Source of the DNA: Podarcis vaucheri
Lineage: Eukaryota
Assembly (NCBI GenBank): GCA_965113315.1
Contig: OZ220369.1
Direction: 5' to 3' (one strand)
Length of the DNA: 64,000 bases
The position numbers and the translations under genes were made by a program. Within the stretch, counting starts at the first letter, position 1. Each line of letters begins with the position of its first letter. Of this stretch, positions 8,335 to 58,579 are shown in pieces. The notes below the pieces were generated by a model. It saw only the letters and a program-made list of their open reading frames with translations. It ran no database searches and was not told the DNA's origin.

Positions 8335-9140
8335 TTATACTGTGGAACCATAAGAGGGATAAACAATTCAAAACTAATCAGATAAGGTAAAGGTAAAGGG
8401 ACCCCTGACCATTAGGTCCAGTCGTGGTCGACTCTGGGGTTGCAGCGCTCATTTCGCTTTATTGGCTGAGGGAGCCGGCGTACAGCTTCTGGGTCATGTG
8501 GCCAGCATGACTAAGCCCCTTCTGGCGAACCAGAGCAGCGCACAGAAATGCCGTTTACCTTCCTGCCAGAGCAGTGCCTATTTATCTACTTGCACTTTGA
8601 CGTGCTTTCGAACTGCTAGGTTGGCAGGAGCAGGGACCGAACAATGGGAGTTCACCCCGTTGCGGGGATTCGAACCGCCAACCTTCTGATTGGCAAGTCC
8701 TAGGCTCTGTGGTTTAACCCACAGTGTCACCCGCGTCCCTACAATCTGATAAAGCACCTCTCAAATAATTTTTCCCTACCTAGAGCTTCGTAAAGGACAC
8801 TGGAAGCTTATTACTGAGCAGCGGAAGAAGAGAAAGCAGCTTTTTGCCAGTGCTGTCTTTTGATAATGTGTGTGCAATGAATCACATATTGGCTGTGTTT
8901 GCACATAAACTGTGGTTAATGTTATTTAACAGACCATGACTCACCTCGCAGACAAGCAAACAAGTCACAGCTTGTTTACTTCGTATCAGAGCGGGTACGG
9001 GGAACTGTGGCGCTCCAGATGTTGCTGAACTACAACTCCTATCATCCCTGACCCTGGCCACTAGCCATGCTTACTGCGACTGACGGGAGTTATAGTTCAG
9101 CAGCATCTGGATGGTCAGAGATTTCCAACCCCATTCTAGA
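8335..9140 (-). pseudogene. Decayed duplicate of the CTSA-like last-exon start and intron 10, split by a SINE
   Basis: 17-bp identity TTATACTGTGGAACCAT (8335-8351 = 21254-21270), then colinear similarity of 8751-8930 to 21322-21508, then the same MITE. Confidence 0.75.
8384..8739 (-). mobile_element. Sauria SINE, full length
   Basis: Reverse complement of the same head and (ACCTTT)n tail; imperfect TSD AATC(A/T)GATAA. Confidence 0.9.
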
Positions 9141-9650: not shown

Positions 9651-10009
9651 GGAGGGACGCGGGTGGCGCTGTGGGCTAAAGCCTCAACGCCTAGGGCTTG
9701 CCGATCGAAAGGTCGGCGGTTCGAATCCCCGCGGCGGGGTGCGCTCCCGCTGCTCAGTCCCAGCGCCTGCCCACCTAGCAGTTCGAAAGCACCCCCGGGG
9801 GCAAGTAGATAAATAGGTACCGCTTACCAGCGGGAAGGTAAACGGCGTTCCGTGTGCGGCTCTGGCTCGCCAGAGCAGCGATGTCACGCTGGCCACGTGA
9901 CCCGGAAGTGTCCCCGGACAGCGCTGGCCCCCGGCCAATAGATGTGAGATGGGCGCACAAACCCCACAGTCTGTCAAGACTGGCCCGTTCGGGCAGGGGT
10001 ACCTTTACC
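9651..10009 (+). mobile_element. Sauria SINE, full length, young
   Basis: About 8 substitutions versus the 5095 copy by eye; 18-bp TSD TTTTTATATTAACATCTT (9633-9650 / 10010-10027). Confidence 0.92.
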
Positions 10010-11721: not shown

Positions 11722-11925
11722 NNNNNNNNNNNNNNNNNNNNNNNNNNNNNNNNNNNNNNNNNNNNNNNNNNNNNNNNNNNNNNNNNNNNNNNNNNNNNNN
11801 NNNNNNNNNNNNNNNNNNNNNNNNNNNNNNNNNNNNNNNNNNNNNNNNNNNNNNNNNNNNNNNNNNNNNNNNNNNNNNNNNNNNNNNNNNNNNNNNNNNN
11901 NNNNNNNNNNNNNNNNNNNNNNNNN
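11722..11925. other. Assembly gap (204 N)
   Basis: Run of n, flanked by T-rich runs. Confidence 1.
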
Positions 11926-17010: not shown

Positions 17011-17399
17011 AACAACACTTTAGATCACTTTTTTTTGGCACAAGTCCAAGCCCATATAGGTGAAACCATGCGGTTCACATGAAAAGATAATGGTTTCAGT
17101 TCTGTAACATGAAGACAAGCAAATAAATCATTCTTCAAGTTACCAGAAAGCATTATTCCAGTGCCTGTCTCACCTGCCAAAAGAAGCCCGGCCAAACTGG
17201 CACCAGACCACAGACTTTTGCCAGAAATAAGATCCCACTACCTCCCCGCCTATCCCCGGTAAAGTAAGGATGTTTATAGGACGTTTGAAACAGATATAGC
17301 ACCTATAAGCAGATTAAAGTCCGTCGTGTATCAGATAGGAGGAAAAAAGAACAAAAACGGGAATTAAGCTCTTTCTCCGCCTGTATTGTAGCAGCCTCT

Positions 17400-18930
17400 G
17401 ACGGGTATCCTACAAGACGATTCGGGAGCGGCTGAGGAAGCCCAAGGGCGGCGCACACCTGGGGCTGGCGGGCGCCTCGACATGGATTAACTAAAGCCTC
17501 TGACCAAGCAACAACGCTTCTCGACCCGCCTCATTCGCTCCCACAAGTAGTGGCCCAAGTCACTTCCGGCTTCAGAGGGCGGGCAAGACAGGCCAACGGA
17601 GCGGACGGGGCCCCTCGCCATTTCTCGGCGGCCCAATTGGGAGGGCCTCCTGGGGTCAGGCAGGAGTCCGCCGTTGCCGCGAGCGACCCTCGGCTTTTAT
17701 TTATTCCGCGGCCGGACTCGCCTTCGGGGCGCAAGAGGGGAAGGAGGGAGAGAGGGGTAGGGGGTTTCCGGGAGGCCTCCTCGCCCCACCACAGGGGACA
17801 ACACGTGCAGGGACAGGCGAGCTACGGGCAGGCCCAGCTCACCACTCCTTTGCTTAGCGCTTCAGCGCCGGCTACGCCGGGAGAGACGCGGGACGCAGGC
17901 CGCCCACCGCTACCGCCACTACCGCTCGGCCTCCCGGTGGCTTCCGCCAGCGCCGGCCTTGCCGCCTGGAGCGAACGGCGCGGTTCTCACCTGGGGCGGG
18001 CCGGGGGCGAGGGTCTCGGGGCCGGGGCGGGCGCCTGGCTGAGCCGCTCGCGCTTCTCTAGCTACCTCCTCCGCTGGTTCCCAAACAAAATGGCGCCGGG
18101 AGTCGCGCGCTCACGTCGCGGCCCTTCTCTTCCCGTCTTCCCCTGCGACGGACGTAAGGCCAGGGGGCGGGGGCTCCTCGATCTCGCTTAGCTCGCCCGC
18201 GCGAGGAAGCCCTGGCCCAATCGCAGGCTGTGTCCAGCTCCCCGCTCGAGCCCGCCTCCCTGCTTTCGTCCAATCCCTACCTCGCGGGGCAGCGCGATAT
18301 TATTTTTTTCCCTTTGCGTCTGCGTAGGGACGAAGGCCAGGTTACCCAATCCGTGTTCGGAAGTGGTTGTTGGAAGCGGAGGGGATGGCTAGGGGGCGCT
18401 GCAGAACTATCGGCCGACAAGGATTGGCTAAAGGCAATATTGAGCTCAGCTCGGCCAATCATAACGTGGCGCCGCGAAGGGAGCGTGTCAGCTACGACCA
18501 ATAACAGTCGGGCGCGGTTGCTGTGGCCGAGGAGACAGGCGTGAGGCGCGATTCCTTGGGAAGTGTAACGGGGCAGCTAGGAGGTCGACGAGCACTCCAC
18601 CCTGCAAGGAAGCGCATGCGCACGGGCTTCCCTGAGGGCAGGGGTGCGCCTGAGGTGGTTGTGCAGCTGCTAAGCGGGTTTTCGCAGCCTCCCTTCGGAG
18701 CCGCTCCCGGCGCCTGGCTTGTGGGGGGTCCTCTCGGAAGTCCGCTTCCCTGGAGCTTCTCCGCGGGGCCGGAGTAGACGGGGGTCTGAGGGGGACCAAA
18801 GTGTTGGAGAAGCAGCATCCTGGGTGGGGGAAACCACGTGCCATTGGGGTCTGTTTCCTTCAGGAAAATAAAAAGGGCAACCGAGAGCGGACGTGAAAGA
18901 GGTGCTTAAAACCACGGCGGTGCGGTGGAG
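17400..18930. promoter_or_regulatory. CpG island / CNOT1 promoter
   Basis: High GC and CpG; six CCAAT boxes (18217, 18270, 18346, 18423 reverse, 18455, 18498), ETS CGGAAGT motifs (~17562 reverse, ~18358, ~18735), NRF1 palindrome GCGCATGCGC 18612-18621. Confidence 0.85.
17991..18110 (-). other. CNOT1: CNOT1 non-coding exon 1 (5' boundary approximate)
   Basis: Donor CAG|gtgaga at 17991/17990 inside a CpG island; YY1-type motif CAAAATGGCG at ~18086-18095 near the presumed TSS. Confidence 0.7.
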
Positions 18931-19849
18931 AAAGTGGGCAAAGAAGTCCCCCCCCTCTCGTAACGTTGAACCCCCGCCAGTGAAGCTGAATGTTGCAAGA
19001 TTCAGGCCCGACCAACTCGCTGCTACTTCCTCCTCGCCTAATTAAAGTGTGTTGCGAGGCCCACAACTCTGAGGGCTTAAACAAATCTGTTTAGGCAGAT
19101 TCGTGGAGAAGGAGAATAGATAGGCAGCTGTGTACAGTGCTGCCAGTAGTCAAGGCTGAGAGGCCTCCAAGTAGGTTAGTGGACAGCACAAGTGTGTTGC
19201 CTTCATGTGGCTGCTTTGGGGCTTCTGGCAGGCATTGGATTGGCCACTCTGAAAATAGGTTATTGGATCAGGTTGATGGCCTGATCAAGCAGTGCTCTTC
19301 CAATTTATTTAATTTGTATACCACCCATAGATCTCGGCAGTCCACAATGTACAAAACACAAAATATGTAATAAAAATAAAATCAAAGACAACACAATATC
19401 CCCTTCCACAGCACATTTTAAAAGGGCATCGGATGTCAGCCAAAGGCCTGGTTAAAGAGGACCATTCCACAAATGGGAAGCCATTGCAGAAAAGGGCCAT
19501 TCTTGTGTTGCCACTCTGAACCTCTCGTGGAGGGGCCTTCCAATGATCTTAAACAGTCTCTTCTTAAACTTCTGATATGTGACAAGAATGGATGTTGGTA
19601 TTAATCTTCTCTTGCTGCCATTTTCCCAGCAAAAATTACCTGGGGTAGGTTATCCTTGCACAAACCAGAGTCTTAATCCTAGGAAACAGGTTGTTTTAAA
19701 TCCCAGAACCCCAATCTTGATCTTTCTCCCCCTTCCCCAAAGTGAGTTGCAAAAAGGCATCACTGCATATGGTTTGGCTCTGCAGAGTAGGACATACTGG
19801 GTTTTTTTGACTACGTGCCATTTTGTGCAGCTTCACACAGTCAATTAAG

Positions 19850-21195: not shown

Positions 21196-21282
21196 TCAGA
21201 TGTAGCTGGCTTTGGAGAGGAAGCATTCAAACATCTTCTGAGCTTGTCCAGGCTTATACTGTGGAACCATGTGACCAGCACC
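21196..21282 (-). CDS. CTSA-like exon 11, catalytic His and stop
   Basis: [28 protein letters not shown]; candidate ATTAAA polyA signal at 21045-21050. Confidence 0.93.
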   Translation of the reverse strand, partial: GAGHMVPQYKPGQAQKMFECFLSKASYI

Positions 21283-24200
21283 CTATATATGAGAGGGAAG
21301 ATGCTTTAGAAAAGAGCTGAGAAAGCACATCTGAAATAATTTTCCCCTTCCCAAAACATCGTGAAGGATACTGGAAGCTTATATTGAGCAGAGCAAGAAG
21401 AGGCAGGAGAGAAAGTAACTTTTCGCCAGTGCTGTCTTGATAATGTGTGTGCAATCAATCATATATTGGCTGTGTTTTCACATAAACTGGGGTTAATGTT
21501 ATTTAACAAACAAGCCATGTATTGTTTATTTAGAGCAGGTGTGGGAAACCGTGGCCCTCCATTTGTTGCTGAACTACAACTCCCATCATCATTAGCCATG
21601 CTTGTTGGGACTAATGGGAGTGGTGGTTCAGCAACAGCTGGCAAGCCAAAGGTTCCCCACACCTGCTTAGATCTTATTTTGTTTTCTAGCTACTCTTGTG
21701 TCATGCCTTCTCAAGCTTGAGGAGCATCTGGGGTAACAGGTAGGGAAAACCACCGTAGTTAGGCAGGGTTGTTAGGTTCATAAGTAATGTTAAACCGTAG
21801 TTAGAATAAGCCATGATTTTTAAGCCAATACCAAGCCATGGCTTCACATTGTCATTTGCTGATAGAAAATAAACAGGCTAGTTTGCTGATATGTTTTCAC
21901 ATGTTCAGACAAACCACAGTTACGCTAAACAAACCATAGCTTAATGTTACATGAGAACCAGGCCTTTGTTACAGGGCTCAGGATTACACCTAAGCCCTTT
22001 TAATAGTGGGTCTCTCCAGCTAGAGAAGCCATTGCCCCCAACGTGTTTTCTGTTGGCTGCTTATGCTCTAACTGTCCAACATTTTTTATGGGACACTGCA
22101 CACACACATATGTCATAGGTGAGGGACTGGATGCTTCTGTAGGGCGCATGGAACAGGTCCTGTTTAACCGTGTACTAAAATCATAGTTGTCGCTTGATGG
22201 GGAGGTGATCTAGCAAGCAATAGCATTTCCCAGGCTAGAAGTAGTGTAAACTCAATCAAGCCATGAGTGCCAACCCTCCACGCCATGTATTGGGGGCAAC
22301 ATTTTATTTGCTCTGTCCCTGATTGGTAGTCAGTGCAGCAGTTTTCCACAGGCTTTTCCTTAAAGGTTTATCCTGGGAGCAAAAAGCCTCATTTTTAAGG
22401 GCAGAAGATTCCCAATGTAAAACTGTTACCCAGATCAGCACTTTTGCCTGCTAGGACCCATTTTGGCAAAGAAATAAAAGGTGCTTCCTCCTCCTAGAAC
22501 CTGAAGGAAAAGCTGGAAGAGTAGAAGTAGCTATCTTTTATAACCCAATGCTTTATATATTGGCTTTATTTACTGTTGGAAGAGGGGTCGACCTTTTTCT
22601 GTGGCTGTGTTGGGATGAGCAGTCACTGGGCCCATCACAAACCTCTATCTTGAGAGCCATGTCATGCTTAAAAAATAACTGAGCCCATATAATGTGCTTT
22701 CTAAACAAGCTTTTGGCTCTGCTCCTGCTTTAAAGTATTGGCTGTTAGTGTTGCTCTTCCTGTTTTTGTGTTATCCTGCTGTTTATAAACTAGTTATTTT
22801 GTCTTTTAATTATTAGCGTGTTGCTGATTTTTACTTGAAATCTGCTCTGAGTAACACTGTTGTACAGGGGAGAAGCAGGGCATAAATCTTTTAAATAATG
22901 AAAAGTATAATGCCCACTGGCTCCAATTAAATCACTGACCTTTACGGTGAGAAATGTGATCTTCTCATACTCCTTGAAAAATCCTGCAATCTGATCATTG
23001 AAATACCAGGGCTGGTAATCATTTAGCACCTGTGGAATTAATGAAAAAGAAGGTCACAAACTGGAAACGGACAGCAGACCCAATATTAGTGTACATACTA
23101 GTCTATCACAGATGCTCCAAAACTGGCTCTTAGTAGACTTATTACTCCAGATCATGTTTTGCTAACTTTCTCTTCATCTCTGCCCATCCATTCTAACTTC
23201 TTTTCTAAATGACAGCTTGGTTATGTCTTTAACAACAACTGCACATCTGTCGGTATTGGAAACCTGGGTCCTAAAAGGCAGGATCAGCTGTGTCTTCCCA
23301 CATAAATTAAGGAGCAATAGGTTTTCAATACAGCACTTAAGATAGCCAAAGTTCAAAGAAGTTACTTACAGTCTGGTTTAAAGACTCAACAAACTTTTCA
23401 GCCCCCAAGAAGTTGCAGGCCATGTCCACGTCTCCATTATAAACCAATGCTCGTAGGTCCTGAGCCAGCAGATACTTGTAGAAGGGAGTCATGTCTCTGT
23501 ACACCCTTTGGTAATGAGCGCTAACCTGTGTACTGCATCGAGAAGAGAAATGCTTGGGGGTGGGGTTCAAGGAGCTTGGGCCCCTCATCCCTTCTCCCCT
23601 TTGTTTCACCAGTAAGATCAACCAAGGGTGCCCTTTTGATTTTGTCACCAAGATGCAAATCCAAGCTGCCAAGAGCATGCAAGTTGGGGTTCTCATTGAC
23701 TGCCAACAGCCACAGAATTCCTTTCCTGCCCCTGCAGGCCTATCAGAATATGAGCAGGAGCCAAGGCCATCCACCACCAAGTGGTTTCAAGAGGAAATTA
23801 TGCTGAATATACAAACCCATGTACTCTATACCTTGCCCCAGAGGAAGAATAATAAATAAGCTGGGGAGAAATAAATGTTCCCAACCTTAGCGGTCCACAA
23901 CTGAGACAAATATGCTTTATAATTTAATCCAGTGATGTCTGGAAGGCAGTTTGTTTTACAACTGTTTCAGAATTCTCATACTATTGAGATCCAACTTATT
24001 AGTTCCAGGCAAAACCTCTTAATGCCCAGTAATAGCAGTTAGTTGTTGTATTCATTGTCTCTTTTAAGGAAAACCATCTAAGCCACAATAAGACATTTTA
24101 ATGGGAAATAGTGGTAAGCATCACTACTTAGAATACAGAAAAATGCGCAACTATGCTAGGTGTGAACAAACGTAAGGATTAGCCATGTGGAAAACCTTAC

Positions 24201-27200
24201 CCATGGAGAAGTTATTTTTGCAAATAAATTTCCTGAACATGTAATGTAACTTCTCAGTGAGACTGAAATACCCAAATAAAAAATGATAATGTTTTGCACA
24301 CCCCTCCAAATGCCCAACAAAAATACCACAGAAGACTATTGATGACTGCATGTCAGTAAGATGAACAAGAAGAAAGGTCCATTTGTCACCTGAAAAAGCT
24401 CTACCAGATGACTCACTATGCATGCAACCCCAACCGAGAAGCAGGGGAAAGATTTCTTCAATATCATAAAGGACTTTTGCCACTTCTTACAAGATGACTG
24501 TAACATGATTGTTGTTCTCCCAGGACTATCAGTATTGGAGATCTGTCAGCTCACCCGAGGGGTCTTGAAGAAGCAGGGTAGTCAGTACATCAGTAAAATC
24601 TTCAGTTCCCTTCACTTGATTTCATATTGTATATCCATACAAAAATTGGAAGTATTTGGGACAAAATTATCTGGGAAAGGAGACTACCCTTGCAGATAAT
24701 TCTGACATCGCTTCCAGGCTTAGGGCAAGAAAGTATGGGCAGAGTGAAACAGGTGCTTCACGTTAGAGGTTTGTCAAAACAAAGATGGGGAAGCTGTTTT
24801 TGTTGCAGTCTGCATTTTCATTTGATCTCAGTCCTAGTACATACCCATATGTTATCAAGCTCTGGCAACCTGCAGTGCATCAGTTCTATACCAGCAGAAA
24901 AACACCACTTTTCCACAAAGCCTTGCCAGGCCACTGCCCTTCATTACCATTCCATTGCCAAACAACTTTTGCATGCTTCTGAAGGGCAGAAACATTTGAT
25001 GGGAGTCACCTGCAGAGCTCCCAGTCTGGGAGAGTGCTGGGGATGTGGAGAGCCTGCCGGACTTCATCCTGGTTCAGCCACATATACATAGCGGTGGCAT
25101 TTATACAATGTGGCACTCCTGGGATAGAGCCAATTTTCTGAAAGTGAAAGCAAGGAGAAGGCAAGATGAGGTTGAATTATTCTGGGGAAAGCTGGTGCAA
25201 GATAACAGCACCTTGCTTTGCCAGACCCAAGCCTGATTCAGCAAGTGGCCCATAGTTCATTTATAAATGGATGAATCATGCCTTCCCAGCATAAACTTTT
25301 GGGAATAAATTTCCATACTGAATATTAATGCTTAAGAAAGCATTTTTTGGGTTGTTTTTTTTAAATTTGCCAAATTCACAGAATCGCTAGAGCCACCTGA
25401 GTGAAGTGTAAATTTGATGAAGATAGCCTAGCAACTCACTGGCACTGGAACATCAAACTGGTAGTGGTGGAAGAGGCTCGAGAAATCAGCTTCATAACGC
25501 TCCTGGTAGTGTGCTCCTCCCCAGCAAGATGCGTAGAGGTTGTACACGTTGAGGCCAATTCCATAAAGAATTCCATAGGCTTGTGATATCTTGAGGATGG
25601 GAACAGGGAAGAAGAGGATAGAAGAGTTAGCTACGCTCTGAGTTTATGTGCAGAAAGAGAAGAAAGGAAACAGATGTGTGGAATTCGGTAATATTTATAG
25701 CCTTTGAGGGTCATCAGTTTATTTTTATGGGTTTATTATCAAATTTATATCTTGCCCTTCTGCCCAAAGTAGCCCAGGGCAGCTAACAACAAAGCGATAA
25801 AACATATTCCAAAATCTTAAAAACAATTCCAATACAGATGCAGACTGGGGTAAAGATAGCCACTGAAAAGACAAGAGATTGCAGCTGTGTAATATTCAAG
25901 GGAAGGGGATCCCCAAGGGTAGGTGCCCCAACACTAAGGATCTGATTACTACATTGTGCAGAATGGACCTCATTATAAGCCGGTACCTGCAGGCAGCCTT
26001 CACCTACAGAGCACTATGGGGTGGGATTATCAGGAATCCTAGTTCCAATGTGTATAGGGATTTATGCACCAAAACCAGCACATTGAACTTAGCCCAGTAA
26101 CTAATTAGCACCCATTGCAATTATTTCAACGGTGTGGTAACATGTTGGCAATATCCTAATGCTGTTCAGAGAATTTGGTGTAGTAGGTGCTATGGGCACA
26201 AAAGAGGGCAAAGACATTTCCAGAAGACTTTACCAGTTCAGGCCAAAACACTTTACCAGTTCAGGCCAAAACACATTATTGCATAACAGTTAGAACATTC
26301 TAGTTTGTGGCCAGGTGCAAATGGAGTTTGCAAAGTGCACACTACATGAGTTAGTATCAAGGATTTTCAGACCAGGCACTCACTGCTGTGATACAATCAC
26401 TGTTCATGTTGCTGGAGAAGTTGCAAGTTCCTTCATCACAGCAGTTTTCATTCAAGGAGGCCCACAAGCTGTAAGGCAGGAGAGAAGGAGGTGGAGTGTC
26501 AGGTAGAGGGAAGCTTATTCATTTTTATTCAGTCATTAAATTTGTATACCACCCTTCACTCAAAGATCACAGGGTGGTTCACAACTTAGAAGCACAAAGT
26601 GTGTGTGTGCGTGCACACACACCGGCTCCCCTGCCCAACAAAGAACAGAAAGTTCAAACAATGTTGACAGATATCTGTCCTGTGTTCCCTGGAGATGTCA
26701 ACAACCTCCCTGACTATTCTGCCTACAGTTTGTGCAAGTTAAGTTTTTCTTTCTGTCCTCTCTTCAGTGGAGATAATTGCTAGTTTTATTCACTGAATGA
26801 AGGACAGGAAACAACGGCTTCCCCTTATTTAGCACACCTTTGACTCACTTGCCATCCAACCACCTTGCTTGCCAGTTTCTTGTTTCTGATGTACTCAGTG
26901 TTAACATGATAAGAGCAAGACCCTTTACTACAGTCTCCGCTCTCCTTTTTTGCTTCTGATTTGATCTGGCAAATGGAGAAAGCGAGGACAAATCTTTTAG
27001 AGGCCAGATGTGCTACCAGTTGTTGACTTGTATGGCGGGAGATTTACCTGTGGCCACTTGCTGACCCAACTCCCCTTGTCCTCTTCTGTACTCACTCATC
27101 TCCAAACACTCCATGGTAGTAGGCAAATTCCATCAGTGTCTCGTCGTTGAGGAAATAGCTCAGCATGCCATTGCCAACCCCAAATCCCTGAGGAATCAGA

Positions 27201-30200
27201 TAACAGAAGATCATGCCAAGAAAGGAGTTGTATGAAATTGGATGATGGGATAGTTAGTTGAAAGGCTATAATTAGAACCAGGCCTGATGCCAGGTTTGAA
27301 GATAGCAGGCAAAGGAACTGTAGTGACTAGTGCCTCATGAGATACAGCTCAACTGGATGTGGGGCAATGGCACCGGACATTCAAAGGCAGCTATCAAGCA
27401 AGGCCTTCAAAGTGGATCCACCTCCCCACTTGGAGAGAGGCCTTCAGGGCTTGTTGTCATCAGGGCAAAGTCTGCATTAGTGGCTGCTGCTTTTGGGTTG
27501 GCAGTGCTCACACATTGCCCCTAAATGTGCCATTTGGCCTACATGGAAGATCTTAACTCTCCTGGTTTTCCAGTGACTCTGCTTCCTGTAGCGCGATTGT
27601 GTTTACCTTCAGGTTAATGCCTGCTGATCCTTCCGCAATCTTGGCAGTGAGAGTGGGGACATAGATTCCACCATAACTTTCCCCAAAGACATAAAATTCG
27701 TTGTTTGCAAAGTCTGGAAATTTAGCAAAGAAACTCTGGAGAGCCTGGTAGTTGTCCTCAGCTACCTGAAGTAGGGAGAAATTTTGATCCACCACTTAGC
27801 TTTGGTGCAAATCATAGGACAGAGTTTGATGTGCATATCATGTGCGGCTGCATTTAGAAACACACTCCTGGCATTATCTTCCCCCACCCCACCCCTCTGC
27901 TCCTCATCCGTCAGGAGTATATGACAGAAGTCTTGATTTGGCTCAGTGAACAGCCAAATAAAGACTTCTCCTACCTGTAAGGCAAATGGATTCTGTCCCA
28001 ACAATACTTACAAACTTTGTGAGCTGATCCCTCACAGCCCAGGCAGCTGTGTAGGAAGTCTATATTGCCTCTGGATAGAAGCATGCCATACATTTAAGGC
28101 ACAGCCAATGCACATTTACAACACATGGCTCCCCCAAAGAATGTTGATAATTGTAGTTTCTTTCTCAAAGAGATGCAGTTCCCAGTGCCCTTAGCAAACT
28201 ACAATTCCCAGGATTCTTGAGGGGAAGTCGTATGGTTTACGTAAATGTGCACTGGCACTTTTAAATCTGTGACTGAGGTCCAGCTCAGAGGGCCTTCTGG
28301 CAATTCCCTCATTATGAAAAAGTGAAGTTACAGGGAGCCAGGCAGAGAGCCTTTTTGGTAGTGGAACATTCTCCCATCATATGTCAAAGATATAAACGAT
28401 TATATGACTTTCTGTAGACATCTGAAGCCAGCCCTGTATTGGGAAGCTTTTAATGTCTGATGTATCACATGTTATTTTATACTCTGTTGGAAGCTGCCCA
28501 GAGTGACTGAAGCAACCCAGTCAGTTGGGTGGAGTACAAATTAACGATGATGATGATGTATAGTGTGGTTCTGCCCTATATTACTGCCACAGGACTGACA
28601 ACCTTCCCCGATCAGCTGCTACCATCACCATTCCAATTATTGCCCCACCCACCACTGGCATGTGATATGCCTCACCCCCGGTTTGTTTCCTTAGGCCAGG
28701 AACGAACAGCAAGTGACCTACCTGGCTGTCATTGATAGGGCTGTCTTCTGTGGCATAAGAATAGCCAACTCCAGCCGGAGATTCCATGTAAAGCACGTTG
28801 GCTACCTTGTTCCAGCTGTTGGGGTTCAGGTAGAGTGTTGCATCATCATTCAGCTACACAAAACCATGAGGCAGACAAAGAGAGTTACTTTGGGCATGTG
28901 AGGTATTTGCAGCACGCTGTTCACTAAATCTTCCATATCAATTGCCTCCAAGCACAGTCTCAGATTCCCAGTCCTTGAGAAATCAGGCATCTGTGAGTTG
29001 GTCTGGGCATTATTGCAGGGTTGCTATACATCCAGATTCTCCCGGACACAAACAGAATACTGCAGTCAGCAGAAGTGTCCAGGCGGAAATTGGGCAAATG
29101 TATGAGAAAATCCCTAAAAGCTCAACAACTTTGGGCAAAACTAAAACAACATAGAGCCCCTTTGCACCTGGCGCTGGTGATCTTACAGTAAGTAAATAAT
29201 GTTGCCTCTGCGCCTGTATAGAGCACCTTTCCCTCCTGACAGAATGATCCCAGGCAGCCTCCACAACTTTGAGATGAGATCAAGAGCTTCAGGCCCAGTT
29301 GAGCCCCAACTGCCTGATCCACAACCCCTTCCTTGTCCTATGTTTCTCTCCTTTCCCATCAGCATACAGAGCGGCCACAGACTCACATGGAAAGGTCCAT
29401 TCTCAGCCAGGAGGCCTTCCATGGAACTACAGCCTGGTCCCCCATTTAGCCAGAGCACCACGGGGTCAGTCGCTGGGTTGCCCTGAGACTCCACAAACCT
29501 GTCAGGATAGAAAGGGAGAGAGCAAACACCCTGATGGATACGTTTAGAGGAGGCCTAAAGAATGGAGACCCGAGGAAGATACCTGATGCAGTAGCAGACT
29601 TTGGGCTCTCAAATTTCAGTGGCGCCCTGTGTGACACTAATATTTGGTGCAATCTCGCCTCTTATGCTTTGTTCTACAGCATTGTTTTGGTGAACCCTGC
29701 AGTGTGGCACCCAGTGTGACTGCTCTGGTTGTGCCACCCGAAAACTGCCTCTGCCTGATGTTGTAGCAGTCTTACAGCTAAGCATGCCTGTGCTGAGTGA
29801 GGGGCTGCATTGGGAACATGGAACAGGGGCATAATCATTGGGGGTGTAAATAAATGTGGTGTTAGCTGTGGGACTAGTGGGGCAGAAGGCAGAGAGGTTA
29901 ATGGTAGGCAGAGAGAGGTGGAGCCACAGCCAGCAACAGGCAGAGCCAGAAAATTTTGTCCCCATCTTCCTCCCAAGTGAGTTCTACAAGATCAACCCTG
30001 AGACTGAGGAAGAGGAAGGTGGCAAGCAGGGCCACTCCCTGGGCCCGTTGTAAATCATAAGGCAAGCAGTTGTGACATGGCTAGGGCTGTGCTTCATTTA
30101 CGCTAGTGAACCAACCCCCACTGAATCAACGTTTTCCTCCATGCAGCTACCCTATGGGCAGGAATCCAGGAGAGAGGCAGGCAAGGAACTACAACATACA

Positions 30201-31093
30201 ACATGGCAGCCTGCTCCTCCTGGACCTGCCTCCCTCCTGCCCCCCCCCCTGCAGGGACATGGATCACCACCAGAAATGAAACAGCTTCTGTTCACATAGT
30301 GGTCTTATTGTTATTGCACTTTGACTTTATTTGTCAGCTGCTTTGGGGGGAATTTGTGCCTGTAAAGGGAAGACACAAATTACTATAATCCATCAATCAA
30401 ACTAAGCAACCAATTTATTCTTAGGCTGCTCCACACAGCTAGTTCCAGGGCAGTAGAGAAGCATAAACGCTTCTGTAAGCTGCGGCTCATCCAGAACATC
30501 TTGGCAAAGGCAGTTTCAACAAATGGTTAGCAAGAGCAGAAGGACATCAGAAGAGCCTGCTGGATCACGCCCAAGGGGGCCCTTCTAGTCCAGCATCCTG
30601 CTCTCACAGGGGCCAACCAGATGCCCCCAAGGAAAACCTGCAGACAACACCCAAACACAAGAGTGCTCTGCCCTCCTGCACATTCCACCAACTGGCATTC
30701 AGAAGTGTTGCTGCTGCTGCCAATGGTGGAAGTCCATGAAGCAGCTGTTGCTTGGATGTTAGCAATGTGTCATGGCCAGGATTAGCTTTTTAGCTCTTAA
30801 TGAGCAAGTGGAAGCATGCATAGGTCGGCCAGCACATACCCAAAAGCAATGAACAGTTCAGTGAAGAGGAGACATGAATATTAACTCAATCTCTCTCTCT
30901 CTCTCTCTCTCTCTGCTTACCAGTAATGGAAGTATTGGCCAGATCCTGCCTGGAGATAGCCGGACCATTGCTGGAAGGTTGGCATCTCAGACAGTCCTGG
31001 CAGGGAAGTGATGAGATCCAGAGAGGCATCTGTCCCTGAGCAGAGGCAAAAGGAGGCACTGAAGACGACACACAACCTGAACAAGAGGTGCAT
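21196..31093 (-). CDS. Cathepsin A-like serine carboxypeptidase (lysosomal protective protein-like, peptidase S10), 11 exons, 456 aa; paralog of CTSA
   Basis: join(complement): 30921-31093, 29387-29498, 28722-28853, 27607-27765, 27096-27187, 26384-26468, 25440-25589, 25010-25137, 23370-23532, 22940-23029, 21196-21282 = 1371 nt, open frame, all GT-AG. Motifs: signal peptide, [26 protein letters not shown] (Ser), YNGDVDMAC (Asp), GAGHMVP (His). Confidence 0.95.
22940..23029 (-). CDS. CTSA-like exon 10 (90 bp)
   Basis: [30 protein letters not shown]. Confidence 0.93.
23370..23532 (-). CDS. CTSA-like exon 9 (163 bp), catalytic Asp
   Basis: [54 protein letters not shown]. Confidence 0.93.
25010..25137 (-). 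CDS. CTSA-like exon 8 (128 bp)
   Basis: [42 protein letters not shown]. Confidence 0.9.
25440..25589 (-). CDS. CTSA-like exon 7 (150 bp)
   Basis: [50 protein letters not shown]. Confidence 0.9.
26227..26272. repeat. 23-bp tandem duplication
   Basis: ACTTTACCAGTTCAGGCCAAAAC x2, perfect. Confidence 0.9.
26384..26468 (-). CDS. CTSA-like exon 6 (85 bp)
   Basis: [28 protein letters not shown] (conserved CC..C..C pattern). Confidence 0.92.
27096..27187 (-). CDS. CTSA-like exon 5 (92 bp)
   Basis: [30 protein letters not shown]. Confidence 0.93.
27607..27765 (-). CDS. CTSA-like exon 4 (159 bp), catalytic Ser
   Basis: [53 protein letters not shown]. Confidence 0.94.
28280..28558 (+). mobile_element. 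L2-like LINE 3' end with (GAT)n tail
   Basis: GAGAGCCTTTTTGGTAGTGG...GAAGCTGCCCAGAGTG...GGGTGGAGTACAAAT(GAT)n; a related 3' end is on the minus strand at ~9490-9597. Confidence 0.55.
28722..28853 (-). CDS. CTSA-like exon 3 (132 bp)
   Basis: [44 protein letters not shown]. Confidence 0.93.
29387..29498 (-). CDS. CTSA-like exon 2 (112 bp)
   Basis: [37 protein letters not shown]. Confidence 0.94.
30890..30914. repeat. (CT)n microsatellite
   Basis: About 12 units, adjacent to the CTSA-like exon 1 donor. Confidence 0.95.
30921..31093 (-). CDS. CTSA-like exon 1
   Basis: ACCATGC start; [20 protein letters not shown] (signal peptide) ...LPGL...[16 protein letters not shown]|gtaagc. Confidence 0.9.
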
Positions 31094-31143
31094 GGTGCTG
31101 TTTTGGCACAGGCTGCCATAGAGTGGGGGAGTTGCAGGGCACC

Positions 31144-36107: not shown

Positions 36108-36210
36108 TCACTTCTTGAGATCCATAAAGATAGCGTTGGTAGTTGTCTGTCCAAAGATAAATGCGCCAAGGATAACCATGAAGACGCCGTAGCTCACCAT
36201 CGCCCACCAG
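36108..36210 (-). CDS. SLC38A7: SLC38A7 last coding exon
   Basis: [33 protein letters not shown]. Confidence 0.92.
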
Positions 36211-39200
36211 CTATGGATAAAAGAGGGGAGATTGGCATGAAGCACACATGATTCCATAACCACTGACCCCACATGGATGAACTGGGCAAGAGGAGGCAGA
36301 AAAGAAGAAGCACAGCTCTTACCTGGCTGGTCTGGCCTCTTGTATTTCGGAGAGCTTGGTGTGGATGAGGCAGAGTCCTGGCAAGGAAGGAGCAGAGGAA
36401 AACGGTGAAGGGAAAAAGCAGCAGAAGGAACCACCAAGGCATTTTTTTTGCAGCCATCTAGATCTCAGAACGATGAACAGTTCTAACAAAGCCAGTGTTA
36501 CATTAAACTGTTTTGAGCAATATCAGGTTCTTGTTGGTGTGCAAAGGAAGTATGTCTTGAACTCTTTAGTGAAAGAAGATCCACCGCTGAGGTGGCTGCA
36601 GAAGAGTCACTGTGCAGAAGAAAGTTGGTTGTGTGGGCTAACAATAAATTGCTAATTTATCCAAAGGAAGTGGGTGTGGGAAGGGTGGCAACTCGGGCTG
36701 AACTTATAGAGAAAGAGAATTCTGGCTAGGGGAATATTCTGGCCTGTCCAGAGCAGGTACCCGCGAGGTGAGGTGAGCCAGGCTGGTAGTAAAGACCACC
36801 AAATAAAGTTCCAAGGAAGCCATCGGCTCTGCTAAAAGCAGAAGTGAACTGAGGTCTTCTGAGTCCCTCTGTCCTGTTTACCCCTCCTAAGCGAGACTCC
36901 CCAGCCTGCGGGCAAGTGTTTCTCTGCCTCTCTGTAGCCTTCTGCCTGAAAGGCTCTCCCTGCCATTGGGCAGGGACCCTGGAGTGGGGGCACCTTGATT
37001 CCTCAGGCAAATCAAGCTGGGGGAGGCACCTCCATGGGTCCCTGCTCACAGCCTCAGGTTCAGATCCCCCCACCAAAAGCAGAATAAGAGCCCCCCTGTT
37101 ATACACAGTCAGCCAGGGGAAACTACCTGGGAAAACAAAGATGAAGCAGGCAGCCAGGCCCCCAATGAGAGAGATGACTTTGCCAATGTCAGGAATGAAC
37201 AAGGCCAGGAGGAGGGTGAGGAGGAACCAGCTGACCGTCTGCAAGAGGCGCCTCCTCCTCTCCCGCACGACGTCTTCTTCAACTGCCTCCCCCTTGTAGC
37301 GCAGCCAAAGGCCTTCCAGCACAGCTCTGGGCAGGAATCCAAGACAAAAGGAGGAGTTAGGGGTTGCCCTCTGCCACTGCAACACCCCCTGCAAGGACTG
37401 CACAGCAGCAGCTGAGGTTCACACCAGCCAGCCCCACCAACTCCTCCCGCTCCACACTCACCGGCCACAGAAATGCAGGATTGGGTAGGAAGTGAGAACA
37501 CAGACGATGATGGAAACCCGGGCAATGGCGACTGGGATGTCGTTGGAGGGGTAGGACATGAGCACATCCTGCTCCACACTGGACCCAAACGTCAAGTATC
37601 CACAGACTCCTGGCAGGAAACAGAAGGAGGAGGAAGAAGAGGAGAAGATGATGAAGAAAGAGGTTCACAATGACCCAGAGCCAACCACCAGCCACTTCTC
37701 ATCCCATGAGGGAAAAGGGTTAGGGATCAGTCTCCTTTTTGCAGCTCAGAAGAGGCAATTGCACGCTTCCTCTTTTTCATCCCGCCTACCTGTGCCCGTG
37801 TAGACAAAAAGAGCGATGACCATGGCTGCTGTCACAACGGCCCCCCATGGCTTCACCTCTGGTTGCTTCATGCTGTGGAAAACGGGCACGCTACTGACAT
37901 GGCACTGCCAGGGAGAAGAGGAATAGGAAAGGGTTTTTAGGTGTGGAAGAGGAGAATGCAAGTTTTCTGATTGCGCAGAAGTCATCAGCCTTTGTGATTA
38001 CTTGCACAGGAGATCCTTCTCCCAGGCTTGTTCTTTGGACTAGTGCAGTTTTTCCACACATACGTTTTCACAGCTGGAGACCAAAGAGCCAGTCAACAAA
38101 TTCAGCAAAAAGTAGCCTTCACCAACCTGGTGCCATGAACATCTGGAGGGAGGATGCTATAACAGGGCCTCTGATTTTCCCTTAAGACGGTTGAAGAATA
38201 AGAACCACCTCTGCCTCATTCCAGGACCCAAGTAACTCACATTATCCCTTTTTAAATGCTTTCTGAACCAAATTCCATCTTAACTTTTCCTAGGACAGCT
38301 GTATTCTTATTCTACAGTAAACCATTTCCCCTTATCCCTCATCTGTCAAAAGTAGGGAGTGCAGGCTCCATATGAGCATGTCAAAAGCTTTTGTCTGTCT
38401 GTTCACACCTTATTCAACCTTTCTTGCAAGAGGTTGAGACTAGTGTACTTAGGATATCACATCCTACTTATAAAAAAATGGACAGAAAAAGACAAGGCTA
38501 CATACCATAAACACCATACGAAAGAAAACACTACAATTTCATCCAAGATAAAAATGAATTAAACTTGAAACAAAGGTCAGGGTTTAGATTGATTATTCTG
38601 CCTCTCTCCCCATCCCATTGCACCCCCCGTGTCTCCAAATAGAGCTGTGAAAGGCCCCTGAATGAAACCCCAGAGAGACCCTGCCAGTCCGGAGGGCACC
38701 ATGATAGCATAGAAAATATTGTTGTGTGGTTCACTGTTCACAGAAATAAAAAGCTTTTTTACATTGAACCGCTGGTTTTACATTGGTACAATTATTATTA
38801 CTGATTAAATTTGTATGCTGCGCTTCGTCTGATCACAGGGCAGCTCACAAAATAAAAATACAAAATGAGAACACAAAATATATAATAAAACAAATACCAA
38901 TAGCTGCTCCCTTCCCCGCAACACACTTAAAAGGCCATAGAATGTTTAATCAGCCAAAGGCCTGGTTACAGAGGCACAGAGAGAGGTGGACTTTCTTGCC
39001 CTCAATGTGCCCACACCCACCTGGGGCCTTCAGACAAGCCTCACCTGGAAGCCAAAGCAAATGGTGGGCATGGCATTGAAGACAGACATCCAAGAGGAGG
39101 GGCTGTGGAGAGGAACACACACGTTAGTTCAGGGTGTGGTTCAGCAAATGTCTACCATCAGCATTTACTCAGAATTGAAAAACCTCCTCCTCTGAGGGGA

Positions 39201-42200
39201 GTAACGTGTCAAGAACTGATTGGCAGGATCTAGTTTTAACTCAGACAGTCAAAATTAATGCAGGAGAGGCACTTCCAAGGAAATCAATCTATCTTAAGAT
39301 GCACACCTCTATTTTCACAAGGATGAAGTCAGGTTACAATTTTCTATACAGACAATACCTAAACTGGAACCCTTCCACTCGCGAACACAGCCTTTCTAAA
39401 TCTGATGTCCTCCAGATGTTTTGGACTACAACTCCCATTAGCCCTAGCCAGCCCAGCCACTGAAATCCAAACATGGAAGGCATCGGGTTGGGAAAGGATG
39501 GGTTAATGCATCCTTCTTCCCCCTACAGTGAGAATTACCCTCTTCCTTTCAGGTGCCCCCCACTGACTGATAGTTGAAAGTTGTCAAGTCCTGAGCAGGG
39601 GAGAACTGGATGGGTCCCCAGCATAAGGATGGCCAAAGGTCAGAGGAACGGGATGTGCCTCTCAGCAGCTTAAAGAGTGGGCAGATACAGTGCCCACCAC
39701 AGAAATAAAAAAGCTTTTTTACATTGATAGTTAAAAACTAACTGGAGACTCTCGATTGGGTAGTCTAGTAATTAAATGGTCAGGTCTCTCCACTGCAGAA
39801 AACAAAGACAGGAGGTGAGGCAACTCAAGAAGGCGCCACCTCTTTCTGAAGGAGCATCACTCCCACATACCTCGTTGTAATTTCCTCTGGGATGTTCTCA
39901 TCAGGCCAAATATATTTGATGATTATGATGGCTGTGACATACCAGGTCCCGACAACACTCAAGCAGCTGTGAGAAAGAGAGAGAGTGGGACAGGTGATGG
40001 AGCTGCTGCCGCTGCTGCTATCTCCCTTCCAAGGATCATCTTGAGATGCCAACACCCACCTTTTGCATCTAGACCTGCCCTTGACAGAGCAGTTCAATGG
40101 CACCTAGTCTTTCACTCAAGCAACACATCCTGGCAAGCAACACAGAGGCACGGCCTGTTTGCCACCCTCACACTTTCATCTCGTGAGGACCCTGGTTGGC
40201 AGCAGTGGCTGAGGAGCATTTGCCAAGATATGTGCCAGCTGAGAACTGGCCTGTGCTTACCTGGCGTATTTCTGGAAGCCAATCTCCTTGGGCACTGAGA
40301 GGGGAAGGATGAGCAAGAAGGCTGTGATGCTGATGGTGAACTTGCGGTCTGTGTACCAGTGGCCGCTCTCTGCCCCTGTGGAGTCCTTCATTAATGCTGC
40401 AATTACTAGACAAAGAGAGACTGCAATCATCCTCTGGGCCCAATCCACCAGGCAGAGGGAAGTCAAAGCTCAAAGGCCAGTGCACAGCTACACACACACA
40501 AAAAAAGACTCTCACAGAGACTTGAACTTCTTATGTCCAAGGAAACACAAAGCAACTGGCATGGAACTAAGGGGAAATTTTGTGTTATAGAAAGGTGTAC
40601 AGAACACCAGAACCCAGGCAAGAGAAGCTCTGGGTTTCTTGCGCTGGACTACACCAGTCGCCAGACTTTGGGAGCTACGAGTCCTATCAGTCAAAGCCAG
40701 CATAGCCAATGGTCAGAGATGATAGAAGTTGAAGTTCAAACTATCTGGAGGGCACCAGGTTAATGGTAGCTCCCTCTGACCCTGTGATTCATGACGCTAT
40801 GAAGGCAATGCTGGCAGAAACCCTTTTCATCACTCAGCAGACACCGCCAGCAAGAGGCATGCCTAGGAGTCAGCACAGCCCTCCCTGCTCCCCAGCAAGG
40901 GTAGCCTAATTCAAGAGCACAATTACTGAGACACGGGAGCTGAGCGCCTTTTGCTATGTGCAAGCCCCACCCCCCAAGTAGTCAGTGGCACACTTGCCAA
41001 GAAACTCACAGGCAGGAGGCTGAACAGGCACCTGGTGCCCAACCTATTCAATGTATCTGTGTGGCAGTCTAGTGTGAATGTGGTGGGTATTAGCCACAAA
41101 GTTCAGTTGGTGGCCTGGGTGCAAGCCATCCTCCCTCAGCCTTGCTCACCACACAGAGCGGTTGTGAGGGCAAAATGCTGTAAAGAAACTTAAAGTATTC
41201 TATATACTGAAAAACAGCATAGGCAGTTATTCTATATAGCCCCCCAGGCTGTAATTCCTCTGAAGGCTACAGAGTATGCCCTCTACAAAGGAAACAGGAC
41301 CTCCTCTTGTGGCATAATTCTGTGAGTTTTCTAGTGTGGAAAGAACCTTTAGCTGTCCAGATGTTACTGAACTACAACTCTTTATCATCACCCCTGGCCA
41401 TTGGCTACAGGGGCTGGTGGGAGTTGCAGTTCAGCAACATCTGGAGGTGTTCCTACACCTGACCTACAGAAAAAGTAAATCAGGAGCTGCAGCCATGGTG
41501 GATGAAGCCAGAGCCAAAAACAGGCAGTTGGAAGCTCTAGGTTGTACAGCTCTTGTTCTCTCTGCAAGCTGCACAAAACAAAGGAGGGGGCGCAGCTTCA
41601 AGCCTCTCACAGTACCAGAAACAGAAGGCCGAGTACACGTCAAACCCCAATGGAGCTCAATCAAACCTTGTCTTCCCAATAAGATTTCAAAATGAGGGAA
41701 GAGGGAAGGGCACAAAAGCCCAAACAGGCCTCCTCCTTTCCCAGCAGTACTCACTCTTGTCCTGCTGATCTCCAATGATGATGAGGAAGGCAATGCAGGT
41801 GCCAAAGGTGTAGACAGCAATGGCCACTTCGCACAGGATCCCGGTGACTTTGCCACACACGGCCCACACTACCTCCTGGTAGGTGCGCTCATTGCTAGCC
41901 TGGGAGCAGTAGGCCAGGATGACAAGGCCACCAATGATGAAAACCAGCATGCACTGCAGCAGAAAAGGGAAGAGTGGCACCATGAGATGAGTGGCAGGCA
42001 CCAGCGGGCAAACTGAAAACAATAAAAAGCTCTGGGCATATTTTTTTTACTCATTTCCTGTCTTGCTTTCCTGCTCCATATATAGTTTAATTATTCTAGC
42101 TTTCCAACCTGCTGCCAACCTGGCTTTCCAGCCAGCACTGGTGTTATGATGCTAGGGCTGATGTGAGATGCAGTCCAAAACATCTGGAGGGCACCTACTT

Positions 42201-42926
42201 GGGGAAGGCTACCTTGTCCCCATGGCAATATTTTGGACATTCTATAGCTGAAAGTTTATTTTTAAAAATACTTTTAAGAGCCTAAGAACCACCTGCTGGA
42301 TCAGGCCAGGGGTAGCCCATTTGGTCCAGCATCCTGTTCTCACCTGCAAGTAGAACCCAAGCAGAAGAGCACTCTCCCCACCTGTGACTTCCAGATTTAG
42401 AAGCATTACTCCCTCCAACAGTGGAGGCAGAGCATAGGTATTGTTCCTCGCAGCCACTGAAAGGCTTCTCTGTGAATTTGCCCAGTTCTCTTTCAAAGCC
42501 ATCCAAGTTGGTGACCGTCACAAGACCTTCACAGCCGCCCACATCAAGCTGTGCTCCAGCCAGGCCAAATGAGAAAGAGCACCAGCACACACTGCAGATT
42601 CCCAAATGGATCCCTTCCCACCGCCCACACGTTTTCCCTCATCCCCACACCCTCCCTGCTTTCACCATCTGCAGCGTGATTCCTGCAGCCACTCCGCCTG
42701 CCATGCTGAAGGCTGCTGGGAAGTTCAGGAGGCCGGCACCCAGGGCCGCGTTCACAACAATGAAGACAGCTCCCAGCTTTGAGGTTGCGGCAGGTCCACG
42801 CTCTTCGTTGCCCTTGGGCCCCGTCTCCACATTGGGGCTCTGCAGCAGCCGGGCCCTCTCGCCGGCATCCGCACTCCATTCCCAGTCACCATATTCGGTG
42901 TTGATCCCCAAGTGGCTTTCAGACAT
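36108..42926 (-). CDS. SLC38A7: Sodium-coupled neutral amino acid transporter 7 (SNAT7), 10 coding exons, 459 aa
   Basis: join(complement): 42666-42926, 41755-41953, 40261-40405, 39871-39966, 39045-39102, 37790-37904, 37462-37609, 37127-37326, 36323-36377, 36108-36210 = 1380 nt; motifs [56 protein letters not shown]; position between CNOT1 and GOT2. Confidence 0.96.
36323..36377 (-). CDS. SLC38A7: SLC38A7 coding exon 9 (55 bp)
   Basis: [17 protein letters not shown]. Confidence 0.9.
37127..37326 (-). CDS. SLC38A7: SLC38A7 coding exon 8 (200 bp)
   Basis: [30 protein letters not shown]...[12 protein letters not shown]. Confidence 0.93.
37462..37609 (-). CDS. SLC38A7: SLC38A7 coding exon 7 (148 bp)
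   Basis: [48 protein letters not shown]. Confidence 0.93.
37790..37904 (-). CDS. SLC38A7: SLC38A7 coding exon 6 (115 bp)
   Basis: [38 protein letters not shown]. Confidence 0.93.
39045..39102 (-). CDS. SLC38A7: SLC38A7 coding exon 5 (58 bp)
   Basis: [19 protein letters not shown]. Confidence 0.92.
39871..39966 (-). CDS. SLC38A7: SLC38A7 coding exon 4 (96 bp)
   Basis: [31 protein letters not shown]. Confidence 0.92.
40261..40405 (-). CDS. SLC38A7: SLC38A7 coding exon 3 (145 bp)
   Basis: [47 protein letters not shown]. Confidence 0.93.
41755..41953 (-). CDS. SLC38A7: SLC38A7 coding exon 2 (199 bp)
   Basis: [29 protein letters not shown]...IIIGDQQDK. Confidence 0.93.
42666..42926 (-). CDS. 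SLC38A7: SLC38A7 coding exon 1 (exon begins at 43123 including 5'UTR)
   Basis: [31 protein letters not shown]...GITLQM|gtgaaa. Confidence 0.92.
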
Positions 42927-44269
42927 CTCCTCCGCTGGAAAGGGCCACTCAGTGGCAGGCTAATCTGTATCCAACGAACCACACTTTGCATCCCCCCCCA
43001 GCCTCCGAGAAGCACCAAGCGTTATCCTGACAGGCATGGATGTGTGGCATATAGAAGAGACATGCCTGAGCTCAGAATAATGTCACAAGCAGGGCTGCTT
43101 GCAGTTTGGTGGGTCATATGGCCCTAGAAGAAACCAAAGGAAAGAGTCAGCTCTGAGCAGATGGAGAGGAAATACAGGCCCCTGCTCACAGAAAACCTCA
43201 AAACCCATGCAGGAGGGGAACATTAAAAAACTCGTTTCTGGGCCTTGTGATTTTTAAAGGATGCAGCAACTGCTAAGAGCTCAGAATCCAAAGTGGAGAC
43301 CCAGGAAGCTATCCCAGCTCAGTACCATATTCACAAAGATTCAAAATTTGGCCCTAGCATACCTGTGGCCCAGCTCCCAAGGCACCAAACTCCAAGTGCC
43401 CAGCACCCAAATATTCCTTTGCAATGGCTAAAACAAGAAAAACTGAAGAGGTCTTCCATTGCTGCTTATCCTCTTTTGTGGGCTGCTAGAGAAACCAGCT
43501 GCATAAGCACTTCCCTCTACAACTCAGCAAAAAAGCTGTTTTGCTCATGCTGGGCAAAGTTTAGAATTGGATTTCTGGGGGGAAAACCACAAAACCACAG
43601 GGTGGAGCTGAAAGATTTCTCAACTGGTGAAAAAAATCAGTTTTGCTCCTCCCAAGCCCCATAATTTCTATTGCATATCCACTGTTGCGGTAAAACCATT
43701 TTTAAAAATTATTTGCTTACATCACCTAGTTTAGTCCTCAACTCCTCAATCGGCCATACAGAAGCGTGTGTTTTTTGGTAATCAGCAAGAGGAATTAAAA
43801 TCTCTGAGGAGCAGGAGTGAGTCATTTGTTCTGTTTAAATTTAAACCCCCCTTCCCCCCAAGATTAACAAACTAGTGTAGGTTTCAGAAAAATCTTCCAT
43901 CATTATACAACATTCTAGATAAGATTCACAATTAAAATTACCCACAAAGCTCTCCCCAATGTGTTCACTTGTGAGTTACATTTTAGGCTCAACTTTCCTC
44001 CAAGGGATTCAAGGTAGCGTCCTCCCCTCCCCTCCATTTAATCCTCACAACAGCCTGTAGGGCAGACAATGCTAAGAGATGACATCCGAGCCAAGGTCGC
44101 TCAGCGAGTTTCAGAGCGCAGAGAAGGCGCCTCTCCCTGACTCACCCACAGCAGGGAGAGGCGAAGGGCTAGACAGGGAGCCGGCAGGCCATTGTAAGCT
44201 GTGGGCTTAATGATCTCGGGGCTGGGAAGGAGACACCCCGCAACCCCTTTAGCTGCTCAGCCCATTCAA

Positions 44270-48635: not shown

Positions 48636-58579
<9,944 letters not shown>

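Follow-up and report, generated by a model that had tools for sequence, protein, structure and literature searches.

Cathepsin A (CTSA, also termed PPGB; MEROPS family S10; PDB entries 1IVY, 4CI9, and 7KDV) is the product of the galactosialidosis gene and fulfills two functions, acting as a carboxypeptidase and as a chaperone for beta-galactosidase and NEU1. In the human enzyme, a linker that lies over the active site and contains about six basic residues (Arg and Lys) is excised at basic cleavage sites between the 32-kDa and 20-kDa chains, thereby activating the zymogen. The canonical CTSA gene adjoins PLTP/NEURL2 in the human genome. Here, a gene of the cathepsin A type found in a different setting, namely between CNOT1 and SLC38A7 on the minus strand (31093..21196) of a 64,000-nucleotide (nt) stretch of contig OZ220369.1 of the lizard Podarcis vaucheri (assembly GCA_965113315.1; hereafter, the window), is considered. 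In what is judged to be the best explanation, held with a probability of roughly 0.8, this is a functional and expressed gene encoding a secreted or lysosomal S10 carboxypeptidase, and represents an old and separate paralog of CTSA that stands with or next to the 'cathepsin A-like' proteins of fishes and sharks and that holds a conserved position adjacent to SLC38A7.

The fish and shark 'cathepsin A-like' proteins, such as P0240 (Chiloscyllium), P0277 (Carcharodon), P0167 (Acipenser), and P0213 (Erpetoichthys), are similar in length to the predicted lizard protein (452-467 residues) and share with it states such as YVFGESYGG and VPQ..PG. In stickleback, ENSGACG00000015895, corresponding to SLC38A7, is found at groupII:11731640, while ENSGACG00000015897, listed as 'CTSA' and termed a CTSA paralog, is found 4.5 kb away, at groupII:11736098; lake and river fish differ in the number of copies of this SLC38A7-linked gene (Chain et al., 2014; PMC4256280). 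Among the papers covered by a full-text literature search, only that study of copy number variation dealt with a vertebrate 'cathepsin A-like' paralog, and none described its function, in agreement with an earlier sequence-only reading of the window, in which the function of the gene was described as essentially uncharacterised. That reading did, however, overrate the novelty of the gene, as genes of this group carry NCBI annotations in many fishes and sharks and as the 2014 study had listed an SLC38A7-adjacent 'CTSA paralog.' What is gained here is, as such, documentation of the group in one more lineage, together with splicing and constraint evidence, rather than a new kind of system.

Results

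An Intact Cathepsin A-Type Gene of 11 Exons

The exon model was obtained by listing stop-free segments of the minus strand and scanning these for frame-keeping GT/AG pairs. In this manner, 11 exons were joined into a single open frame of 1371 nt, comprising 456 codons and a stop codon, with no internal stops and with GT..AG ends at all 10 introns. The end coordinates and length of the uninterrupted 456-residue frame previously proposed from the sequence were hence reproduced exactly.

Exon 1 (30921..31093) encodes residues 1-57 and two bases of codon 58. The ATG at 31093 has a favorable context (ACCATGC) and precedes a hydrophobic stretch that, judged by eye from its hydrophobicity, would correspond to a signal peptide. 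A second in-frame ATG is found 96 nt upstream, at 31189, and would prepend 32 residues to the hydrophobic N-terminus; no contig mapped to the region 25100-31099 (see below) extends to this codon, such that the predicted start at 31093 is provisional. Exon 2 (29387..29498) encodes residues 58-95, including a 10-residue motif at positions 74-83, and matches Pfam PF00450 (Peptidase_S10) with an E value of 9.6e-17, while exon 3 (28722..28853) encodes residues 96-139 and includes the NDS136 sequon. Exon 4 (27607..27765), encoding residues 140-192, contains GESYGG (residues 167-172) with the catalytic Ser169 and again matches PF00450 (E 2.1e-18). Exon 5 (27096..27187) encodes residues 193-223 and exon 6 (26384..26468) residues 223-251, the latter with a cluster of cysteines (C232, C233, C238, and C248). 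Exon 7 (25440..25589; residues 252-301), in which a shortened activation linker begins, aligns with human CTSA residues 238-266, and exon 8 (25010..25137; residues 302-344), which includes C312, NAT314, and C343, aligns with human CTSA residues 301-334. NGDVDMAC (residues 376-383), with the catalytic Asp380, is encoded by exon 9 (23370..23532; residues 344-398; PF00450, E 2.2e-13). Exon 10 (22940..23029; residues 399-428) was delineated by the GT/AG scan, and exon 11 (21196..21282) encodes residues 429-456 and the stop codon, with GAGHMVP (residues 429-435) containing the catalytic His432. The sequence ATTAAA is found at 21050, 145 nt past the stop codon.

The catalytic Ser, Asp, and His are accordingly found in the order typical of the S10 family, within GESYxG, DxDxxC, and GAGHMVP contexts. 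The predicted protein also contains four N-glycan sequons, namely, NDS136, NFS239, NAT314, and NQT396, the first and third of which we take to correspond to the N117 and N305 glycan sites of human CTSA, as well as eight cysteines (positions 81, 232, 233, 238, 248, 273, 312, and 343) presumably matching the positions of the four disulfides of the human enzyme. The triad motifs, conserved cysteines, and sequons had all been pointed out in the earlier reading.

When eight exon-bearing open reading frames (ORFs) were scanned, PF00450 matched five, four above the gathering score (E 9.6e-17, 2.1e-18, 8.2e-05, and 2.2e-13) and the fifth just below it. The closest solved structure for each of the three exons tested (exons 4, 7, and 8) was human or mouse CTSA, with the alignment of exon 4 to human CTSA residues 121-165 (E 1.7e-11 to 5e-11) spanning the GESYAG site. 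On the basis of its sequence, the predicted product is assigned to peptidase family S10 and is of the cathepsin A type, sharing with CTSA the PF00450 signature, the Ser-Asp-His motifs, an N-terminal signal, and approximately its length. SCPEP1 and CPVL, members of the same alpha/beta-hydrolase S10 family, were absent from among the close matches, the best of which were all of the cathepsin A type, no direct comparison with either protein having been made.

Such a protein would enter the secretory pathway by virtue of its hydrophobic N-terminus. Judging from the triad, the oxyanion-region motif, the cysteines at disulfide positions, and the two sequons at glycan positions, it would adopt a fold like that of cathepsin A, and may serve as an acid serine carboxypeptidase that trims C-terminal residues from peptides in the secretory/lysosomal pathway.

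Splicing at the Predicted Sites and Purifying Selection in Related Species

The use of the predicted splice sites was considered by aligning assembled contigs (Logan) from four public runs with the region 25100-31099, which covers exons 1-8. The runs (X2, X7, X11, and X14) come from four studies and represent three relatives, designated organisms B, C, and D. That these are RNA runs was guessed; runs of this kind hold 6-12% of the sampled words, approximately the exonic share of the window, as compared with 98% for organism G, the probable source. In the contigs, six of the ten introns are missing, with the breaks where predicted (25137>25440, 25589>26384, 26468>27096, 27186>27606 (+1), 27761>28718, and 28853>29387), with CT..AC ends throughout, such that joints are seen on both sides of exons 3-7. 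The skip 27761>28718 has 7 letters of slack and is thus consistent with the predicted 27765/28722. The joint 25137>25440 was seen in all four runs and the joint 28853>29387 in three, and exons 4-3-2-1 are linked in one contig of 592 nt, with 30923-31044 of exon 1 being joined to exon 2 in X14. Splicing between exons 8 and 1 thus takes place as predicted in no fewer than three related species.

The 18 exonic differences listed between the window and the contigs comprise 14 synonymous and 4 non-synonymous changes, two of the latter in one codon, while the listed indels all fall outside the exons. The crude dN/dS ratio calculated from these listed differences between close relatives, beyond which 44 further differences exist, is 0.08. 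The ratio is hence not near 1 and supports purifying selection on the gene in close relatives.

In the same alignments, summed contig depth rose into the hundreds or thousands in each of the four runs within the intronic stretches 28100-28700, 30500-30700, 26500-26700, and 25700-25900. These stretches, which show many loose ends, correspond to interspersed repeats abundant in those transcriptomes.

Homologs of the Predicted Protein

Database searches were run exon by exon, with the joined translation being used locally (BLAST, MAFFT, and IQ-TREE) in comparisons with fetched proteins. A full HMMER search with exon 9 against 1.84 billion representatives returned animal proteins of the cathepsin A type, including tortoise CTSA (P0102) and a bichir 'PPGB' fragment (P0059), as well as five single-exon ORFs that share 70-82% of their residues with the query. 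In three of these five, homology stops at the limits of exon 9. The five ORFs represent orthologs in other genomes. An argument from intron position, namely, that canonical CTSA splits the exon 9 counterpart, was set aside, as genomic and transcript-derived sources of short ORF fragments are indistinguishable.

When tunicate P0060 and shark P0240 served as queries in word searches, some 150 proteins of 452-467 residues were identified in sharks, rays, and ray-finned fishes, named by NCBI as 'cathepsin A-like,' 'lysosomal protective protein-like,' or 'lysosomal protective protein.' Over the full length, these are the proteins that match the predicted protein best (54-59% identity). The best 120 matches in the P0060 and P0240 searches came only from tunicates, fishes, and sharks, together with one nematode protein, and included neither an ortholog from a named tetrapod nor a canonical CTSA of good quality. 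A further search was performed with residues 276-359 of catshark P0284, a region chosen because the predicted protein there outscored all bony-fish rows; the 14 candidates obtained included no tetrapod, a blank that is not evidence of absence. A protein-cluster search with Acipenser P0167 returned generic S10 clusters only.

These searches also revealed two genes on the same contig in each of Carcharodon (P0277/P0281), Scyliorhinus canicula (P0284/P0287), and Mobula (P0263/P0290), with the two copies being 69-85% alike. This indicates that the paralog underwent a duplication, probably a tandem one, among cartilaginous fishes, whereas one copy is seen in the lizard window. Several representatives of 1400-2300 residues (P0001-P0006, P0010, and P0013) contain three or four tandem S10 domains of the cathepsin A type, and could represent either genuine multi-domain proteins or tandem genes that were fused.

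Relation to Canonical CTSA and to the Fish/Shark Group

Identity levels were compared over 296 columns, in which tortoise CTSA was represented by a badly predicted protein with 125 of its 425 residues masked. The predicted protein is 59.1% identical to the fish-like rows and 51.0% identical to tortoise CTSA, which is itself 54.4% identical to the fish-like rows and 68.6% identical to bichir canonical CTSA. The predicted protein, moreover, shows none of the seven states common only to the two canonical rows, while five of the eight fish-like-only states are present.

In a maximum likelihood tree of 33 rows, in which the canonical clade consists solely of tortoise CTSA and the 311-residue bichir fragment, the best grouping unites the predicted protein with the fish-like rows (support 69/66), with the canonical pair standing apart (98/91). 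In a second tree, snail P0082, acorn-worm fragment P0120, and sea cucumber P0042, all long or partial, were omitted. The pruning was decided upon after the first tree had been seen, while the hypothesis had been named beforehand. In this pruned tree, the predicted protein and the fish-like rows group together at 97/90, to the exclusion of canonical and tunicate CTSA.

Several observations nonetheless weigh against the proposal of an old, functional lineage standing with the fish/shark group. When the 33-row tree was subjected to the approximately unbiased (AU) test, placement of the predicted protein with canonical CTSA, at a cost of 15.4 log-likelihood units (lnL), was not rejected (p=0.112), and the canonical clade addressed in that test comprises the heavily masked tortoise protein and the short bichir fragment. 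In both trees, the predicted protein appears on a long branch (0.9-1.1) and outside sharks and ray-finned fishes combined, not beside bony fishes. Likewise, the splicing evidence is from related species only, from runs guessed to be RNA, and from exons 1-8 only. The unrejected placement would suit a scenario in which canonical CTSA was translocated from the PLTP/NEURL2 area into the CNOT1-SLC38A7 interval and there evolved quickly, as would human CTSA being the best PDB match, although the PDB is without any structure of the paralog. Yet such a translocation is very improbable, given that the pruned AU test rejected the canonical placement (p=0.025; delta lnL 23.4), that identity to tortoise CTSA falls so far short of that between bichir and tortoise (51% versus 68.6%), that all seven canonical-only states are missing, that linkage to SLC38A7 is also seen in a teleost, and that purifying selection (dN/dS ~0.08) argues against a fast-drifting copy. 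As for the S10 phylogeny put forward in the sequence-only reading, the position of the predicted protein outside the canonical pair held, while the strength of this result varied with pruning (p=0.112 unpruned versus 0.025 pruned) and involved two poor canonical rows; the wider assertion that the gene is a paralog and not canonical CTSA was borne out by the trees, the AU test, identity levels, signature residues, and genomic position together.

A more serious contender, if still an unlikely one, is that the gene represents a third, separate cathepsin A-type paralog that arose in the early vertebrate genome duplications and is not the ortholog of the fish/shark gene. This would account for the predicted protein lying outside sharks and ray-finned fishes in both trees (the fish-only branch being supported at 97/93 in the pruned tree), for the cost of 7.2 lnL (p-AU 0.07, 33-row tree) incurred upon enforcing the species-tree placement with ray-finned fishes, and for the presence of five of eight, and not all, fish-like-only states. 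At the same time, the AU test leaves that species-tree placement unrejected, a long branch alone would draw the predicted protein toward the base, and the stickleback CTSA paralog, a putative member of the fish-like clade, is likewise found beside SLC38A7. As the predicted protein falls on a long branch outside sharks and ray-finned fishes, its orthology to the fish gene is likely but falls short of proof by sequence. Finally, the least probable of the alternatives considered holds that the gene is a decaying or silent duplicate in which the open frame was kept by chance. In its favor, the splicing data come from relatives, with no run of RNA from the source organism, but a frame of 456 codons with 10 correct GT-AG introns, exact spliced contigs in three related organisms, 14 synonymous versus 4 non-synonymous listed differences, an intact triad, and eight cysteines at what are presumably CTSA disulfide positions all speak against decay. 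The proposal of an old and functional CTSA paralog, with or next to the fish/shark 'cathepsin A-like' proteins, is thus preferred. The predicted protein is sister to that whole group, on its long branch, and shares only ~51% of its residues with a sauropsid canonical CTSA.

A Short Activation Linker

Since the alignment of exon 7 with human CTSA ends at residue 266 and that of exon 8 begins at residue 301 (1IVY numbering), the linker of the predicted protein could be delimited to residues 287-309. These 23 residues, of which a single one (Lys) is basic, replace the 34 residues at positions 267-300 of the human protein, such that the predicted linker is 11 residues shorter than the long, basic excision linker of canonical CTSA. 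Sharks present the same short form as does the predicted protein, whereas ray-finned fishes present a longer form. A shorter linker with a single basic residue suggests that activation is probably different or unnecessary; as such, zymogen activation of the predicted enzyme probably differs from that of CTSA or may not be needed at all.

Genomic Neighborhood

All neighbors of the cathepsin A-type gene in the window are, like the gene itself, on the minus strand. Downstream, 5' coding exons of CNOT1 are found at 5489-5656, 3769-3948, and 648-923, the last of which aligns with CNOT1 residues 128-212 of PDB entry 8fy4 (E 2e-40). A CpG island at 17251..19000 (CpG observed/expected >0.65, GC >0.55), probably the CNOT1 promoter, lies ~2.2 kb downstream of the cathepsin A-type stop codon. 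The upstream neighbor is SLC38A7, with coding exons at 36111..42959, three of the exon ORFs matching Pfam Aa_trans and the N-terminal exon (42642-42959) being read by eye. GOT2, encoding mitochondrial aspartate aminotransferase, is found beyond, at ~48.6-58.7 kb. The CNOT1 structural match and the Aa_trans exons thus confirm the flanks assigned from sequence. The order in the window agrees with the human order, GOT2 - SLC38A7 - CNOT1, with one extra gene. Accordingly, this 11-coding-exon gene has CNOT1, SLC38A7, and GOT2 as its neighbors and is not adjacent to PLTP/NEURL2, where canonical CTSA is located.

CNOT1, SLC38A7, and GOT2 each have a CpG island at the 5' end (17251-19000, 44251-44750, and 58001-59000, respectively). 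No CpG island is seen at the 5' end of the cathepsin A-type gene (31.1-31.6 kb), the lack of which suggests a tissue-restricted promoter.

Elsewhere in the window, an assembly gap spans 11722-11925. No Rfam family was detected at gathering thresholds across positions 1-64000, nor was a snoRNA detected in that part of the CNOT1 intron covered. Copies of a ~300-nt putative tRNA-derived short interspersed element (SINE) are found in CNOT1 intron 1, at 5092-5391 and 9652-9951 (direct, 97%) and at 8570-8720 (inverted, 80-83%), and a similar translation is seen near the end of the window, at 62277-62624. With its tRNA-like end, this element may be akin to squamate SINEs.

Discussion

The lizard gene and the stickleback 'CTSA paralog,' a putative member of the fish-like clade sampled here, are both linked to SLC38A7. 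If the two are the same gene, then the SLC38A7-linked paralog is older than the divergence between ray-finned fishes and the lineage leading to lizards. The regions 16q13-q22 and 20q13 are presumed to be paralogous (CETP/PLTP, SLC12A4/5, and ELMO3/2), which makes an origin of the gene as an ohnolog plausible. One may tentatively envisage that the early genome duplications left vertebrates with two cathepsin A lineages, a PLTP-linked one and one linked to SLC38A7/CNOT1, near the CETP paralogon. The latter would have remained active in fishes and in the lineage of the window, probably a reptilian one, and have been lost in mammals. In such a scenario, for which the odds fall a little short of even, the short, non-basic linker would reflect a lysosomal or secreted carboxypeptidase that is constitutively open or differently activated, and that plays a role distinct from the protective function of CTSA, for example, in the processing of yolk or peptides.

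The gene family addressed here is already known to genome annotators and the gene was touched upon in the stickleback study, such that the surprise is smaller than first suggested. Still, a second conserved and expressed cathepsin A-type gene in non-mammalian vertebrates would offer a natural way to separate the two functions of CTSA, with the altered activation linker providing a concrete difference open to test. At the same time, the gene introduces a caveat for CTSA-deficiency models based on fish, reptiles, or birds, in which the paralog might compensate for the missing enzyme. It is in these respects that the gene is of use for lysosomal biology and for the study of CTSA deficiency in such models.

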